A DNA stretch of 8,556 nucleotides from Geosiphon pyriformis uo1 (lineage: Eukaryota; Fungi; Glomeromycota): contig JAAOMT010000020.1 in assembly GCA_016748015.1 (NCBI GenBank), positions 1-8,556 on the forward strand, read 5' to 3'. The position numbers were made by a program, and so were the translations under genes. The notes under the pieces are model-generated. The model had not been told where the DNA came from. It saw only the letters and a program-made list of their open reading frames with translations, and did no database searches. Shown here piece by piece: positions 1-8,556 of this stretch. Positions within the stretch are counted from its first letter, which is position 1, and the number at the start of each line of letters is the position of its first letter.

Positions 1-1291
1 ATAAGGTCCCCAAGATTGAGTGGTAGAGCTTAAGTGTAAATGCTAAGGTAAGAACCCATAGTACTTTAAGTCCCCTTTCCTAGTCATGCTCATTGGTAGA
101 GTTGGTATGGGTAAATGGCCTCAGTCTTGTTACTGTACGGAGGGGGGATAGGTCAGATCATAAGTGTGTACCATTGAGCGCCTAAAGGACCTAATGTTAG
201 CTTAGGGTTATATTAGTGGATCACTAGAGGCTCTAGGAGGTGTACTTCCCTAGCTATATTATAGCCACCCTGTAGAGGACAGTCATGGTATATACACTCA
301 TGGTGGAGATCTTATACTGCTCATACTATGGTAGTGTTGCTATGCTAAGTTACTTACAAAGTATCCGCATTCATAACCACCATCCTTGTAGTGAGGGTAG
401 GAGGTCTAATGGATCTGTTACATTGTTCATACCACGCAATATCATCCCCCTACCTAGTTACTTAGAGCTACAGTGGTCATAACAATCCTGTAATGGAGGA
501 TGTAACTAATAGCAGTTGTACAACTAACCTGGTGATCTTATACTTACACTGATGATACAGGGTAGAGGAGAGGTGGACTGGATTCTTAACAACTAAGGGA
601 TTTCCCACTAAGTATCACTGGAGCCTCAGGAGTTATAGAGGTCATTGGAAATGTACCTGATCACTAGTTAAATTCATACCCCTGTGAGAATCCTTGACAG
701 TCCCTTTGGTATATTACATAGGACTTTTACCTGTTAGATTCAGTGTGGTTAAAGTTAAATTGTGAGCTATAGGCTAGGATCGGATGGGATAGGATTCCAC
801 CATACCCAGTCTAATGGTCCTATTGGTAGAGCATGAGTAGGTAGTGTACAATCCCTTAGGTAGAGGTAGGTCTAGTTTGATCCTCTTTGCTAGTCATGGG
901 TATCTTATTAGGTATTGTACCATATAGTTGAACAAGTTATGGAGTTTAATAAGTAACCCCCAGTTAATTACCTTGGAAGCCCATCCTGATGGTTGATGGT
1001 ACAAGGGTACAAGGTTTAAGGTCATGGTACTCAAATCCCCTACATACCAGATGAGTAGTTTTAGAGTGTAGCTAGCTAGCCGTTACTCATGGATCCTTGG
1101 AGAGTTATAGGGTATTATAGCCAGTATCCATCCTAATCCTTCAGTGAGGACATTAGCCACAGTGATAAGGATATACCGGGTCTACGGGGCTATATCTGAC
1201 TGCTACCTGCCAATCATGTATCCACCCACCCCCTTTTACTGGTGGTCTGGCAGTAGCACTGAACTTCTCTACCCAGCCAGAACCCCCCCCC
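1..1291 (+). repeat. Direct repeat copy 1 of terminal redundancy (period 7265 bp)
   Basis: ATAAGGTCCCCAAGATTGAG at position 1 recurs at 7266. The identical 65-aa ORF appears at 285 and 7550 (offset 7265). No mismatches found by eye up to the C9 run at 1283-1291. Confidence 0.98.
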
Positions 1292-1463
1292 TTACCAAGG
1301 ATCCTTGGGGAGTCCTTTACTTGGCAGGGAGTAACTTCTAAATGTATTTGTGTGTCCAGTGGACAGGGTCCTGGCTGGCTAGAGGCTCTAAGGATATCCT
1401 AAATATATTGTACTGGAGAGGTATTACCTATAACCCCTTATCACTTTGCAATGGACCTGCTTG

Positions 1464-1643
1464 CCCCCCCCCCTCCCATGATTCCCCCCCCCACCCAACT
1501 TGCGGAGGCAGGCATTGGCCCTGCCAAGAGTTGGGCGCCCCATCCTTGCTGGAAGCCAGTGGCGAAGCCTCGCAGGCCCGCGCTTTTGACGGAGGCCCCC
1601 ACCAAAGCTCCAATACCCATCTTTCAAAAGCCCCCCTATATAA
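1464..1643. promoter_or_regulatory. GC-rich structured control-region-like element (candidate origin/promoter)
   Basis: C10 (1464-1473) and C9 (1484-1492). Nested stems CCCAACT 1494-1500/AGTTGGG 1529-1535 and GGCAGG 1507-1512/CCTGCC 1520-1525. CTGG-AAG-CCAG 1549-1559. GCGAAGC 1562-1568. GCTTTTGA 1582-1589/TCAAAAGC 1624-1631. TATATAA 1637-1643. Function is inferred. Confidence 0.55.
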
Positions 1644-1689
1644 GGTACTCTAAAGACCTCACAAGGATCACCAATCATTTAAGACAACA

Positions 1690-2300
1690 TTGCTCTATCT
1701 TTGACTTGTGGCGCCCACAATATAGCTCTTTAGGCAGGCTGATTAGTTCCAGATGTTGGGTACTGTGCGTTGGAGCTAACAGTATTCTAATGTTACTAAC
1801 GGTTATTCCTAATATGGGACCATAATGGGTAATCTCTATATCTTGCCATATTAGGCCGCTCCTAGTTACTCTATACGCTACTCCAATACTTTGTATTGCG
1901 TACTATCAGCCGGTTATCGCTCCCCATCGAATAGAGCCCGTACCAGTAGTAGGATGAGTGAACATAGATCTGGAAGTTGCAAGCCGACTCATAGAAGCCC
2001 GCTTGCTTATAAGGTTCATAGCTTTTGTAATTACCCTTAATCAATAGGGATCGCATTACCAGACAAATGGAGCGCTAAGAGTCCTGGCTACATAGTTATG
2101 CTCTTTGAGTAGGGCCTGATTCTCATTAGTACTTTTGTTAGCTGTCCTATTTGTATTGAGTGGGTTCCATGGACCCTATGCGAAATGAATGATTAGCGAT
2201 GATGGTGGAGTCATAGCGGGCGCTTTGTATTGAAGATAATGGCTATAACAGCTTTTAACTGTGTAGTTTGGCCATCGCCAAGTTTAATTACCCCTTGCAA
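1690..2300 (+). other. Putative cryptic (edited, recoded or pseudogenised) membrane-protein gene, weakly nad2-like; boundaries approximate
   Basis: With TGA=Trp, frame +2 from 1784 to 2236 has about 62 of 151 codons with T at position 2 (hand count). It gives several TM-like stretches: ILMLLTVI, LLVTLYATPILCIA, LLIRFIAFVITLNQ, WFSLVLLLAVLFVLSG. Only TAA 1823, TAG 2045 and TAG 2093 interrupt it. Motifs fall in nad2 order: YCALEL (frame +3, 1761-1778), IAPH, YQTN..LRVLA (2057-2089), LSGFHGPYAKWMI (2156-2194). Confidence 0.35.
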
Positions 2301-2343
2301 CTACTGGGCATATACTCGGTAGGCTATGGGATCCTATGTGTGA

Positions 2344-2377
2344 GCCTGGGGGAGCGGTTTGGTTAGCACTCCCCGGC
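2344..2377 (+). terminator. GC-rich hairpin closing the island (possible termination/processing signal)
   Basis: GGGGAG 2349-2354 pairs with CTCCCC 2369-2374, extended by GCC 2344-2346/GGC 2375-2377. Composition returns to background just after it. There is no U-tract, so it is not a classical intrinsic terminator. Confidence 0.3.
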
Positions 2378-3702
2378 CCTGTAGATTCTACGGTATTATA
2401 GAGTGTACCATGTGGGATCTCCCTCAGTAGATGTAAACTCAGGTAATGGTGACCAGTATTTGTAATAGTATTTACGGTACCTACTAAGTAGATAGACTAC
2501 ATGGGCGTTAAACTGAACTTGTTCTCATCCTCCTATAATGAGCTACCTTACCCTCAGTATCCACTGTCCATACAGCTAATTCTACCCCACCCATAAAACT
2601 GTACAGGTTAGAGGTATGGCAGGGAACCCCCAACTACAGTGTGAGTTTGTATCCTACCAGTAATACTAGGATAACTCCCACATAAAGCTAGGAACTAGGG
2701 TAAGTATAGGAGGGATCCCACATCTCAATGAGGAGTCTCATATAGAGGTCCGGGTAGTACCTGGACGTACCATGACACTTAGTATATTACAGGTGTAACT
2801 TACTTACTATATTACCAATCCATTGAGAAATTGTACCCACACTGTAAACTATCCTTAGTAGTACCCCCCCTCCCAGTGTATAAGATTGACATGGTATTTC
2901 ATATCCGTACAGCGTTCTCAATGAGTAATTAGTAGTTATCATTGTATGGATAGAGTAGGCCTCAGTGGTAGTAGCTAGGAGTACCCATCCTAATATATAC
3001 CTCATACAGCCCCAGTGCTGGACCCAACTAGGGAAGTAGTATCATTGGAGGGGTAATATAAGATACTCCCACTAAGTACTCTATACGCCTTGTCCTAAGG
3101 ATGGGCAGGTTAGAGGCATCTCACACCATGAGCATTGTACCTGGAGGGGTCCCCCCCCCCCCCCCTAGCTAATGAGGTACACTACTTAGTCAAGTATAAG
3201 GGATGGCTATTTGATTTGGTACTCCTACTATCTAAACTGTACCACATAATCCCACCAAGGACTATAGTTATCTAGAGTACCCGCCCGGAGCTAGTATATA
3301 TGTAATGTGTCAACTTCCTTTATAATATACCTATCCTTAGAATTCTGGATGGTTCCCTTCTACCATGCATTGAGTACTACTGGAGTACCGATCTCATATT
3401 CCTTACAGATAAATTACTAGTCATGCTCATGGTACTGGTTAATTGAGCTTGGTATAGGGCTATGGATCCTTGGAGATATAGCTAGGACTAAGTACTATGA
3501 CTATTACCCACGTATTGTAACATGAGTAAGTGTAAGTAGGTAGTAGTAAGTAGTTAGGATAGCATACTGAGTCTTGCTCCTGTTGTAACATACCATTGTG
3601 CGTGTGGCATCAGTACAAATATCCCTAGCCATGACACTTGTGAGGATCTAGATTCTTACCAGTTAGTATAAGGATGGTTCACTTTGGGAAAAGGCTCCCC
3701 TC

Positions 3703-3776
3703 TGGACTGGTAATACACTTAGATCCATGGATATCCCTTTTACCTGGGTAGTATCCTAGTAAGTATAACCAGTCCA
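3703..3776. repeat. Inverted repeat, 13/14 match, 46-nt spacer
   Basis: TGGACTGGTAATAC 3703-3716 versus GTATAACCAGTCCA 3763-3776. The spacer holds the palindrome ATCCATGGAT (3723-3732). Confidence 0.75.
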
Positions 3777-6700
3777 TCCATGGACCTCCCACCACTTTGA
3801 TATGTGTGGATTAGCGTACAAATAAGACGTCCTCACTTAGTGTAATGGTACAAGTTTATACCCATCTCAGCTGATTAACTATACATGGGTATCCCACTGT
3901 CACTTAGAGGTCTGTTTGGTCCTTAAATCTCCCTACCCTAAAGGTACTTGGGTACTGGGTACTGGCCTTGGGTACGTAATATCAGTCATAACTTTAGTGG
4001 TAGTCTCTACTGTACAGGTCCAATGGTACCCATAGACTGGTAATGACTAGCTAGCTCTATGAGTTACAATGGATGGGTAGTGCAGTAGCTTTAGAGGATA
4101 AGGTACAAGGTTCAATCACACCCCTAGCTGGATACGTATGTCATGGTTATAGTAGGATTCAGAGTCCTCCAATCCATAGCTCCTACCTGCTAGCGATCCC
4201 TACATGAACAAGAGTTATCCTTCCTTTACTACGGTGATCGGTTCGGTTGTCAACTGTGTTAGATTATACTAAGCTGCTTAGGAGTTCATAGAAGTTAGTA
4301 AGATACTCAGTATGTTTAGCCTATATGGTATAGGGTATATAGTAGAGGTCAGGTACTATGGTATCCTGTCATAGATGATGGGCTAGATATACCCTACAAT
4401 CTACCTTAGCTAGGATCCAATATATTAAAGGTAGTATGGTACCAAGTGTGGCATGATATAGCTCAATACTACCGAATCCTGTACAAGAGTGTATCCCCCA
4501 TCCCCATCCCCAGTAAGTACTAAGTCAATGGTACCTATTCTCAGTAGTTGGAGAGTTAGGAGTGGTACTCTAGCTCCACTTAATCTCACTAATGTAGTCC
4601 CTGTATAGCTTAGCATTCTATGTAGGATAGGTAGAGAGTAATCATAGGTAAGTACCAGACAAGTACCCCCCCCTTATTACAAGGGTATCTTATAACTGAA
4701 CTATACTTACTAAGAGAGGTTACCTAGTGATAAGATCCTCTCACCCCCCCCCCTGCCTATTCTAGTACCTCATAGAACTTAGTAGTACAGGGTGGTTCCC
4801 TCAGTATAAATGGAGATGGTTAGCTGGTACTTACTGAACTTGTATGTGAGCCTTACACGGTCGGTGCCACTTGTATTGGAGTTACCTTAGAGGTCATACC
4901 CACTAAATACCACTCACTTTATTAGACTTAACTACTAACTAGCCAGTCCCTTGGACCCGTTACTCTCCCGTACTGGGCAATAGTACTGAGACTTGTTATG
5001 GTAGTGTAGCATCTTCAACCTTACAACCAATGGGTGGGTAAGATACTCCATTTAATTCTAGCTAAGTACTCCTCAGGTACATAGTGCTACCACTCATACC
5101 TCCTATAACCTGTTATCTATTTACACTATGATACCCCATGAGCGGTAATATTACTGCTAGCCTCAATGTCCAATCCTAATGATAAGACACTGTAAGGTTA
5201 GTCATACTCAATAGGACTCCCCTATTATCTCCATATCCTCCCCAGTCCCCCACCACCCCCCCCTACCCCTAGCCATATCACCGTCAACTACTTGGTATAT
5301 TGGACTCCATCAATTACCAGTCCCTGTACCCCAACAGTACAATGCCCATTACACTACAGGATAACGAATGGGGAACCTGGTCAGGGTTTAAGGCTTGTAA
5401 CAAGTTCAATAGGGTCAGCTATTACATCTACCAGATACCATATACCCTATACCATAGGTACACTATCTTAGTACGAGTACTTGGTACAGGATATTGGACT
5501 TGAGCAGTACACCCATAGTCTCTAGCCACTACCTTACTACATGGGCATGTACTGATACTTTATGTGATAGAGATAATTCATACCCTATAACTGTACCAGT
5601 GGATATCATTGTACATTGTCTATTGGCAACCTAATCTCCCCCCCCCATCTACAGTGCCATGGGGTAGCAGTACCTTATAGTTATGGGATATGAACTATAA
5701 CTTTGTAACAGTCATTTATCCTACTTAAGCTAGTACACTAAGTACCCTATCCCCTATCACAACTCCTATGATGGTACCCCCCCCCTCATCCCCGCCCTAC
5801 CCCCCCTGTCCCATAGCTCCAGGCAGACCATCCTGAATGTTCTAGGTAGTCTGTACTGATCTTGGGTACACATCTTATAAGAATACGTTATGACTTACTA
5901 CTACTACTCCATCTACATAGATAACTACCTGCCTCATATGGTTAGCTAATATATGGTACTCAAGGACGAGTAAGTGTACAGTGTAAGTATTTGCTAAGTA
6001 ACTAATGATTTTTAGGGTCTAATTCGACTGTATTTGTACTGTACTCTACTATCAGTGGACCGCTAAGGGTCATTGTAGATCCTAGTAAGTTCGCAGTTGG
6101 GTATCCTCAGTCCCCTGTACGGTCCCTTACCTGTACCTGAATCTTAGAAAGTAAATGATCCCAGTACATGGGTAGATGGATAGGGAATCCCATTACAGTA
6201 CACTACCATATATGGAGATCAGGAATAATACATAGGTCAATGATGTTTACCTTTCAATCAGTCTCCTTGGTAGCTCCAGTACCTAATTATGGGGATAGAG
6301 AAGATGGGTATATTACCACTATACCATTTACCCTAATGATACAAGGCTATAGGTGATCCTAGTAGTACAAGATAGTGAAAGGACCTTATTTTACTCATGC
6401 ACTCACACAGCAACCCTGGGGATACACCTACTACTAATACTATTGGAATTTAGGGTTAGGGTTTGGCTATACTAGCAGATTGTAAGGGAATTATAAGTAC
6501 CTATAAGAGTCCCTGCGCCTCAATACCTCATAGCAACCTCCACTGAATAATGACTGATGGACTTGTACCCTTTACTTGTACCATAGTACCTGCCCCCCCT
6601 AGTATACCACTGATCTGGTATCCCGCATGGTTGGTACTGGTAATAGGTTTACTTAGTATAGTGATTTAAGATAGGAGATGGTCATTGATATTACCAGTCC

Positions 6701-7265
6701 TATTAGGTAGTTAAGCATAGTTAATTTCTTCTAGATGATAGCTAGCACCTAGACCCCCATTACATGAGGTAAACAATCTCCCTAGTACTCCTGTCTAAGG
6801 GAGGGGACTGGCAATCCTATTGCAAAGTACTAACATGTAATGGTATCCTAATGGGTACATATCCTGTGGAGTGTTAGGTGAAGTACCTGGGATTGTGGTA
6901 GAGGTATGGGTAAGGGTCTTATGAATAGCTAGGTACTACCCCTATTGCTAAGTTATGGATCTCTATCCTAGTACCCCTTACCAAGTACCTACCAATGACC
7001 TATGATGGTACACCCACAGTCCTTACTTACTCCCACTATAACCGTATTCATCTGGATGTGAGAGTACCATATCCCCAGTACCAGTTACCATTGATACGGG
7101 GACTCCCAGCCCCAATACCTCAGATACTGCAAAGCTTAGCATCCTTACTGGGAGGGTAGAGGGGATGTTGTACCCTACTGACTAATATTCAGATCTGTTA
7201 GCTAGTATACTTATACCCCTAGTACTGGACTGCTCCATCTACTTGCATAGTTAGGAAGTAGTGGT

Positions 7266-8556
7266 ATAAGGTCCCCAAGATTGAGTGGTAGAGCTTAAGT
7301 GTAAATGCTAAGGTAAGAACCCATAGTACTTTAAGTCCCCTTTCCTAGTCATGCTCATTGGTAGAGTTGGTATGGGTAAATGGCCTCAGTCTTGTTACTG
7401 TACGGAGGGGGGATAGGTCAGATCATAAGTGTGTACCATTGAGCGCCTAAAGGACCTAATGTTAGCTTAGGGTTATATTAGTGGATCACTAGAGGCTCTA
7501 GGAGGTGTACTTCCCTAGCTATATTATAGCCACCCTGTAGAGGACAGTCATGGTATATACACTCATGGTGGAGATCTTATACTGCTCATACTATGGTAGT
7601 GTTGCTATGCTAAGTTACTTACAAAGTATCCGCATTCATAACCACCATCCTTGTAGTGAGGGTAGGAGGTCTAATGGATCTGTTACATTGTTCATACCAC
7701 GCAATATCATCCCCCTACCTAGTTACTTAGAGCTACAGTGGTCATAACAATCCTGTAATGGAGGATGTAACTAATAGCAGTTGTACAACTAACCTGGTGA
7801 TCTTATACTTACACTGATGATACAGGGTAGAGGAGAGGTGGACTGGATTCTTAACAACTAAGGGATTTCCCACTAAGTATCACTGGAGCCTCAGGAGTTA
7901 TAGAGGTCATTGGAAATGTACCTGATCACTAGTTAAATTCATACCCCTGTGAGAATCCTTGACAGTCCCTTTGGTATATTACATAGGACTTTTACCTGTT
8001 AGATTCAGTGTGGTTAAAGTTAAATTGTGAGCTATAGGCTAGGATCGGATGGGATAGGATTCCACCATACCCAGTCTAATGGTCCTATTGGTAGAGCATG
8101 AGTAGGTAGTGTACAATCCCTTAGGTAGAGGTAGGTCTAGTTTGATCCTCTTTGCTAGTCATGGGTATCTTATTAGGTATTGTACCATATAGTTGAACAA
8201 GTTATGGAGTTTAATAAGTAACCCCCAGTTAATTACCTTGGAAGCCCATCCTGATGGTTGATGGTACAAGGGTACAAGGTTTAAGGTCATGGTACTCAAA
8301 TCCCCTACATACCAGATGAGTAGTTTTAGAGTGTAGCTAGCTAGCCGTTACTCATGGATCCTTGGAGAGTTATAGGGTATTATAGCCAGTATCCATCCTA
8401 ATCCTTCAGTGAGGACATTAGCCACAGTGATAAGGATATACCGGGTCTACGGGGCTATATCTGACTGCTACCTGCCAATCATGTATCCACCCACCCCCTT
8501 TTACTGGTGGTCTGGCAGTAGCACTGAACTTCTCTACCCAGCCAGAACCCCCCCCC
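7266..8556 (+). repeat. Direct repeat copy 2 (circular overlap or start of next tandem unit)
   Basis: Matches 1-1291 and runs to the last base of the window, ending with the C9 homopolymer. Confidence 0.98.

Follow-up and report, generated by a model that had tools for sequence, protein, structure and literature searches.

The 8,556-nucleotide (nt) window considered here (the whole stretch of DNA that was analysed, on contig JAAOMT010000020.1) raises the question of what kind of molecule ends by repeating its own beginning and presents almost nothing that resembles a gene. The window is tentatively read as one small circular chromosome from a diplonemid-type multipartite organelle genome, which would carry a short hydrophobic coding piece with TGA specifying tryptophan. 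It contains a circular-mapping unit, a gene-free backbone, a compositional island and, at 1.7–2.5 kb, coding-like statistics. The main new result is a codon-like periodicity that is confined to 1.7–2.5 kb (p about 0.001).

The circular-mapping unit

In a self-comparison of the window, bases 1–1291 are identical to bases 7266–8556 at 1291 of 1291 positions with an offset of 7265, and the exact 1291-bp terminal redundancy described in a first-pass annotation of this DNA is thus borne out. From this exact repeat, the unit is 7,265 bp long (1–7265; GC content of 43%) and is present 1.18 times, with the second copy of bases 1–1291 (100% identical) at 7266–8556. The unit maps as a circle or as a tandem repeat. 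Physical circularity is something that we infer and do not demonstrate, because a head-to-tail array gives an identical picture. The description of the DNA as probably circular and 7.27 kb in length therefore holds for the circular-mapping unit of 7,265 bp and leaves a physical circle and a tandem array undistinguished. The window resembles a circle assembled from long reads, and a tandem array is equally compatible with the 1291-bp overlap.

The two identical ends might also be the long terminal repeats (LTRs) of an LTR-type element or a collapsed repeat that was walked twice in a cycle of the assembly graph. The LTR layout fits numerically (1291 + 5974 + 1291 = 8556), and such repeats are known to produce contigs that look circular but are not. 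However, the repeat starts with ATAAGG and ends in a C-run, with neither the TG start nor the CA end of an LTR, and a tRNA-complementary primer site is absent at position 1292. No gag, protease, reverse transcriptase (RT), RNase H or integrase fragment is found in any frame. Moreover, the repeat extends exactly to both contig ends, as a circle or a tandem array demands, and an LTR-type element or assembly cycle is very improbable.

The island, its left shoulder and the coding-like signal

A single region of the unit (approximately 1500–2350) is unlike the backbone in its oligonucleotides, as seen in an order-3 Markov score, in the CpG and GpC frequencies and in indices of the repeat-induced point mutation (RIP) type. 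The Markov model was trained on distant backbone and checked on held-out backbone, and it assigns the island a backbone-likeness of −0.35 to −0.01 bits/base, compared with 0.109 ± 0.046 in the held-out backbone. The observed/expected ratios of CpG (0.54) and GpC (1.19) in the island are near normal, in contrast to 0.17 and 0.50 in the backbone. Along the unit, the CpG ratio is 0.4–0.8 over approximately 1400–2400 and 0.0–0.3 elsewhere. The RIP-type indices of the island are 1.10 and 1.34 and are not positive. The island borders display no direct or inverted repeat of at least 8 nt. One compositional island had been claimed for this DNA, at 1460–1680; the island is confirmed, but the Markov score places its bounds at approximately 1500–2350, and 1460–1680 is merely its GC-rich left end.

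The GC content peaks at 1200–1700, where it reaches up to 0.57. The stretch at 1100–1500 is rich in GC and in C-runs and is backbone-like in other respects. A GC-rich left shoulder of the island on the plus strand (1283–1640; GC content of 0.52–0.57) contains C-runs at 1283–1291, 1464–1473, 1484–1492 and 1631–1636, and the cumulative G−C curve reaches its maximum at position 1120, just upstream of the shoulder. The shoulder is a candidate control or origin region.

The coding-like signal is observed in stop codon distribution and in codon-position composition. Stop codons are unevenly distributed over the six frames of 1156–2496 (block-shuffle P<0.001) and of 1639–2496 (P=0.002), whereas control windows of 900 nt in the backbone from 2251 onward give P values of 0.24–0.99. 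When base composition by codon position (a 3 × 4 table) is followed in 540-nt windows all the way around the circle, periodicity reaches p<0.02 at two places, in windows starting at 1711–1936 (minimum p of 0.0011) and in those starting at 6346–6391 (p of 0.012).

The candidate coding frame, for one or more hydrophobic peptides, occupies 1700–2236 on the plus strand (codon starts equal to 2 mod 3). It is interrupted by TAA at 1823, by TAG at 2045 and 2093 and by TGA at 1955, 2117, 2186 and 2231. The second codon position contains 39% T and 17% A, and the translation displays several hydrophobic, transmembrane-like segments of 15–27 residues. The mean hydropathy of the frame is 0.9–1.25, and its 60-codon windows account for 9 of the top 25 among 1542 windows. 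Judged by the other five frames, 10.6 TAA or TAG codons would be expected, and three are present (P=0.007); TGA, with four occurrences against 2.6 expected, is not avoided. This stop pattern fits a code in which TGA is a sense codon, as TGA is in most non-plant mitochondria. An alternative stop-poor frame is located on the minus strand at 1156–2496, where 447 codons include seven TAA or TAG and five TGA (block-shuffle P<0.001 for the smallest number of stops in any of the six frames). The translation of the minus-strand frame is hydrophilic and has no homologue.

We infer an organellar location, sister circles, TGA read as tryptophan, joining at the RNA level and an origin or promoter role of the shoulder. 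The organelle would most likely be a mitochondrion, and the chromosome would be built like those of diplonemids. Its long backbone would encode nothing and would serve in replication and transcription only, and the region at approximately 1.5–2.35 kb would be the single short unique region, with one or more fragments of a gene whose product is a small hydrophobic membrane protein. Each coding piece would be read with TGA as tryptophan, and the in-frame TAA and TAG codons would either lie between pieces or be taken out at the RNA level. A working mRNA would have to be trimmed at its ends, joined with pieces that other circles encode, or edited. The C-run-rich shoulder at 1283–1640 would be the origin or the promoter.

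The gene-free backbone and its composition

The longest open reading frame (ORF) of the window under translation table 11 encodes 124 amino acids (aa), and the longest stretch without a stop contains 140 codons. The longest open frames remain within the range of Markov shuffles when each stop codon or stop pair is reassigned to sense, with one exception, TAA as sense, which is due to the GC-rich island. The six frames of the unit, read also across the junction, contain 172 stop-to-stop pieces of 24 aa or longer. Each was scanned singly against Pfam, and none matched better than E=0.057, which is noise given so many queries. PHROGs and NCBIfam returned noise only for the 140 of the 172 pieces that are located in 1–5856. 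In these scans (Pfam in six frames; PHROGs and NCBIfam for 1–5856), no Rep, polymerase, capsid, RT, integrase or other domain is observed, even as fragments. A blastn search against 72,556 plasmids and 50,697 phage records gave no match, and no protein relatives were found in viral loci. For a phage, plasmid or CRESS-type (circular Rep-encoding single-stranded DNA) replicon, the profile scans (Pfam in six frames; PHROGs and NCBIfam for 1–5856) reveal no replication-initiation or structural protein gene.

RNA genes and signals were likewise sought. No tRNA is found in the window, the permissive metazoan-mitochondrial mode of ARAGORN yields four tRNA candidates compared with 2.4 in shuffles, and Rfam gives no match at E≤1 in the window. 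Promoter-like and terminator-like sites are as frequent as in shuffles or rarer. Predicted RNA structure has a mean z of +0.39 around the circle, and no value falls below −2.6. The first-pass annotation had described the DNA as almost all non-coding and had recognized no rep, capsid, RT or transposase ORF, and both statements stand, the former by ORF length and the shuffle range of the open frames and the latter by the Pfam (172 pieces), PHROGs and NCBIfam (140 pieces) and blastn searches.

These searches bear on the possibility that the window is a decaying selfish or satellite replicon (plasmid-like or virus-derived) or a circle left over from a degenerating endosymbiont genome that reads TGA as tryptophan. 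The genes of such a molecule would be eroded, and traces of reading frames would be left only in approximately 2 kb (450–2500). Stop heterogeneity does continue in weaker form leftwards to approximately 450 (over 450–2700, P = 0.03, 0.07, 0.0075 and 0.10), stop-poor frames on both strands are found only within 265–2500, the 447-codon minus-strand frame has 12 stops, and TGA is tolerated in the plus-strand frame. The lack of any Rep, polymerase, capsid, RT or integrase domain in the profile scans, even a fragmentary one, argues against a decayed replicon, as do the blastn result for plasmids and phages and the promoter-like and terminator-like sites, which do not exceed those of shuffles. CTAG and GTAC are also enriched, unlike in bacterial DNA. 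A decayed replicon is improbable.

The backbone (2451–7265, continuing through 1–1100) contains no gene and no repeat and exhibits an extreme dinucleotide bias at a GC content of 42%. Outside approximately 1100–2450, the observed/expected ratio is 0.17 for CpG, 0.50 for GpC, 1.57 for TpA, 0.6 for ApA/TpT and 1.4–1.6 for CpC/GpG, and TpG and CpA (0.99 and 0.92, respectively) are not in excess. GCC and GGC are depleted, and TAG, TAA, CTA and TTA are abundant. The commonest triplets are TAC (275) and GTA (270), and GCA and TGC, each found 47 times, belong to the rarest. Among palindromic tetramers, GTAC occurs 104 times, approximately 4-fold above the approximately 27 expected by our own arithmetic from base frequencies, and CTAG is enriched. 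TGCA (9), ACGT (6) and TCGA (2) are approximately 3- to 14-fold depleted relative to the base-frequency expectation.

The backbone has a polarity, given by strand-specific words and by C-runs on one strand. The hexamer TAGAGG, for example, occurs 15 times and its complement CCTCTA does not occur. On the plus strand, 13 C-runs of at least 6 bases (6–15 bases in length) start at 1283, 1464, 1484, 1631, 2864, 3151 (15 C), 4666, 4744, 5256, 5638, 5777, 5800 and 6593. Four of these are grouped where the island begins on its left, and a single G-run is present, at 142. There are no runs of six or more A or T and no A-tracts. Internal repeats longer than 22 nt are absent by self-blast, the program TRF detects short, weak arrays only, and repeated 8- to 14-mers are as numerous as in a fourth-order Markov chain. 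A perfect 14-bp palindrome, CCAAGGATCCTTGG, at 1295–1308 falls within the range of Markov simulations, and three copies of GGATCCTTGG (1091, 1299 and 3464) are within Markov expectation.

The RIP-type indices of the backbone (TpA/ApT of 1.51; (CpA+TpG)/(ApC+GpT) of 0.80) are positive throughout, the thresholds for such indices being 0.89 and 1.03. The overall pattern suggests a pressure towards C-to-T and G-to-A changes that has acted over the long term and has spared CpC. The composition is nevertheless left unexplained because neither 5-methylcytosine (5mC) decay nor RIP of the Neurospora type covers the whole pattern; both are insufficient because TpG and CpA show no excess and because GCC and GGC are depleted as well. 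In its two index values, its stops everywhere, its absence of ORFs and its spared CpC, the window is like RIP-mutated nuclear relics of fungi. It is unlike them in that CpG and GpC, not CpA, are the most depleted, the GC content is still 42%, the two 1291-bp copies are identical and no transposon protein remnants are found.

This composition bears on a nuclear explanation, by which the window would be 1.18 units of a 7.27-kb tandem array (a macrosatellite) or an extrachromosomal circle that arose from such an array. The backbone would then be spacer DNA that has undergone hypermutation or methylation. The island would be a protected stretch in which CpG is normal, for example a promoter accompanied by a short or decayed gene. 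A tandem array predicts the 1291-bp end overlap equally well. The CpG ratios of 0.17 in the backbone and 0.54 in the island, the RIP-type indices, which are positive along the entire backbone but not within the island, the abundance of TAG, TAA, CTA and TTA expected after C-to-T hypermutation and the absence of a detected replication gene are all in agreement with it. However, the lack of a TpG/CpA excess and the depletion of GpC and of GCC/GGC are explained neither by 5mC deamination nor by CpA-directed RIP, and RIP would make neighbouring copies diverge, yet 1291 bp are identical. A contig that ends after 1.18 units would also be more typical of a long-read circle. The nuclear explanation, whether as a tandem repeat or as a circle that arose from one, is unlikely.

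Comparison with fragmented organelle genomes and searches for relatives

Diplonemid mitochondrial chromosomes are circles of 2–12 kb, with class A at 6 kb and class B at 7 kb in Diplonema papillatum (PMC3035467, PMC7049700), and consist of a non-coding constant region, which makes up ~95% of each, and one cassette of ~0.2–2 kb with a gene fragment (PMC3035467, PMC5658414, PMC7049700, PMC3936708). The modules and rRNAs of diplonemids escape BLAST, Rfam and hidden Markov model (HMM) searches (PMC3936708, PMC3035467), and cassettes without a module and cassettes of up to 12 kb are known (PMC7049700). The window is similar in that it is a small circle-mapping unit, more than 85% gene-free, with one short distinct region whose coding content, if any, escapes homology searches. 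Its length of 7,265 bp lies inside the diplonemid range of 2–12 kb and compares with 7,182 bp for class B, and its extreme of cumulative GC skew lies in the backbone. Other features differ. The GC content is 43% and XhoI sites are absent from the window, whereas D. papillatum mitochondrial DNA (mtDNA) is GC-rich; GCA and TGC words, common in published diplonemid primers, are strongly depleted; and the island spans approximately 0.85 kb, compared with a median diplonemid cassette of approximately 0.3 kb.

Identity with D. papillatum itself is rejected by the lack of an XhoI site, the lack of arrays and the GC content of 43%, and the cassette motifs of Namystynia are absent from the window. BamHI sites are located at 1091, 1299, 2329, 2713, 3464 and 4413 and predict a fragment of 3,943 bp. 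A 4-kb BamHI clone of Diplonema mtDNA is mentioned in PMC3035467, and the likeness is taken as a coincidence, as the other diagnostic features of D. papillatum are lacking. EcoRI and HindIII have one site each in the unit.

A further parallel in design, not in sequence, is provided by Sulcionema specki, whose class D circles are mostly unique non-coding DNA and whose "empty" class A chromosomes have cassettes that lack a detectable module (Kaur et al. 2020, PMC7049700). Like these, the window is mostly non-coding, maps as a circle and lacks a detectable module. Because circles of Sulcionema can be mostly unique, the island could be the shared part of the molecule instead of the unique part.

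Two other systems with minicircles differ from the window in their genes. The mitochondrial minicircles of the red algal Stylonematophyceae combine a cassette with a constant region, and their rRNAs are hard to recognize (PMC10250338). They contain complete, recognizable coding sequences, are GC-rich and include tandem repeat regions, no gene-free circle was found among them, and the window differs from them in these respects. Dinoflagellate minicircles likewise have recognizable genes and are usually 2–3 kb in size, whereas the window has a unit of 7.3 kb and reveals no plastid protein domain or rRNA.

The window might nonetheless be a guide-RNA minicircle of the kinetoplastid type or an "empty" plastid minicircle of the dinoflagellate type, in which the conserved core would correspond to the island and the remainder would be variable, with tiny RNA genes. 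Such molecules are also small non-coding circles with one distinct region, free minicircles of 4–12 kb are known from bodonids (PMC6334171), and the unique fraction of 83–90% in Sulcionema class D circles illustrates how the island could be shared rather than unique. However, the universal minicircle 12-mer GGGGTTGGTGTA (conserved sequence block 3, CSB-3) is absent, the best approximations having two mismatches, as chance would give (three found against 1.67 expected), and A-tracts are missing (AA/TT of 0.6). A kinetoplastid minicircle is unlikely because CSB-3 and A-tracts are absent. The plastid version lacks any detected plastid gene or rRNA and would have a size of 7.3 kb, far above that usual for dinoflagellates. 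A minicircle of either type is, overall, very unlikely.

The homology searches aimed at the island treated its stop-interrupted frames (1700–2236 on the plus strand and 1156–2496 on the minus strand) as separate pieces of at least 20 aa. Pfam gave no match for the pieces of either frame, and six island pieces from both strands have no relevant match among Protein Data Bank (PDB) chains. Three word searches of a collection of 5.8 billion protein clusters and exact look-ups of ten ORFs also found no match. A HMMER search with the 140-aa piece against 1.84 billion representatives produced two matches with E values of 5e-4 to 9e-4. Both matched proteins (P0001 and P0002) are translated tandem DNA repeats with units of 48 and 98 aa, scoring 26–30 bits per stretch, and their E values are inflated because of this repetition; judged from these sequences, both matches are noise. 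The two proteins and window positions 1688–1750 have in common the short pattern Q-x-S-x-L-G-x-(L/I)-(I/T)-(S/T)-S.

The proposal that the window belongs to a fragmented organelle genome, already made in the first-pass annotation alongside that of another non-autonomous replicon, can be weighed on these results. In its favour are the small circular-mapping unit, the gene-free backbone and its strand polarity, the one distinct region and the weak coding signs in 1.7–2.5 kb. Several observations weigh against it. No mitochondrial or plastid gene or rRNA piece is recognized in the island by Pfam, PDB, Rfam or comparison with Escherichia coli rRNA. Sister circles, which in diplonemids share a constant region (>90% identity over >100 bp), were sought with six exact backbone probes of 21–26 bases, and none matched in IMG/VR, JGI metagenomes or GTDB genomes, collections that are poor in protist organelles. 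ORFs of the backbone and island are absent from a collection of 15 billion proteins. Diplonemid chromosomes are rich in repeats, which hampered their assembly, whereas the window is devoid of intrachromosomal direct or tandem repeats. The coding signal itself is modest (p about 0.001–0.007), the contrast between TGA and TAA/TAG reaches only P=0.047 in a Fisher test, and the minus-strand frame is equally stop-poor and may be the true frame. A diplonemid-type organelle chromosome is the preferred, if tentative, identity, with which the data are consistent and which they slightly strengthen; it is not demonstrated, because the collections searched are prokaryotic, viral or metagenomic. A variant by which the window is an organelle chromosome of an undescribed lineage, either a deep or unsampled relative of diplonemids or an independent origin of single-fragment circles, is rather unlikely; context-dependent mutation would have shaped its repeat-free backbone and would have been resisted by the coding island.

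An organelle chromosome of this kind would be a further example of extreme gene fragmentation and of bloat in non-coding DNA. Its repeat-free backbone with a strong mutational signature would be unlike those described and would show neutral mutation pressure in that organelle in a clean form. Were the molecule a nuclear repeat or a dead replicon instead, it would hold little general interest. In either case, the classification of circular-looking, gene-free contigs such as this one needs the reads as well as the other contigs of the assembly.

Two structural RNA candidates in the island were examined and rejected. On the minus strand, 1905–1927 shares 13 of 15 positions with the peptidyl-transferase motif of 23S rRNA (2447–2461), and a hairpin comes after it. 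A large subunit (LSU) rRNA is rejected, as nhmmer finds nothing, the best blastn alignment to E. coli 23S rRNA (L001) has E=9.3, and a collinear chain of seven universal motifs scores no better than in the backbone. The second candidate arose from the 22-mer at 1901–1922, which gave five matches as a probe of the metagenome collection. In three contigs (L003, L004 and L005), the 22-mer is the 5′ end (P1–P2) of bacterial RNase P RNAs, and these 22–23 nt also occur in unrelated bacterial DNA (L002 and L006). Two independent exact 22-mer matches are obtained where approximately 0.1 would be expected. An RNase P RNA is rejected in that the likeness stops after 22–23 nt, Rfam gives none at E≤10 in 1300–2500, and an RNase P profile stripped of its first 25 columns gives no match in 1850–2450 at E≤1000. 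The apparent CR-I segment of RNase P is merely the complement of the same 22-mer. Both leads, which concern short sequence matches, are treated as coincidence. Bases 1898–1922 can pair imperfectly and at long range with 2070–2101 (−22.9 kcal/mol), enclosing approximately 147 nt, and 1885–2115 folds no better than shuffles (z of +0.9 and +0.2 on the two strands).

The second weakly periodic stretch of the unit is located on the plus strand at 6346–6930 (p of approximately 0.012 among approximately 13 independent windows). It is backbone-like in composition and has no Pfam match, and its coding-like signal is probably due to chance. Hydrophobic windows occur at 6336–6844, with an open frame of 69 codons at 6460–6666 that includes one TGA. 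Two tandem units of the telomere-type sequence TTAGGG are found at 6450–6461 inside TTTAGGGTTAGGGTTTGG, and single copies are located at 202 and 6012.

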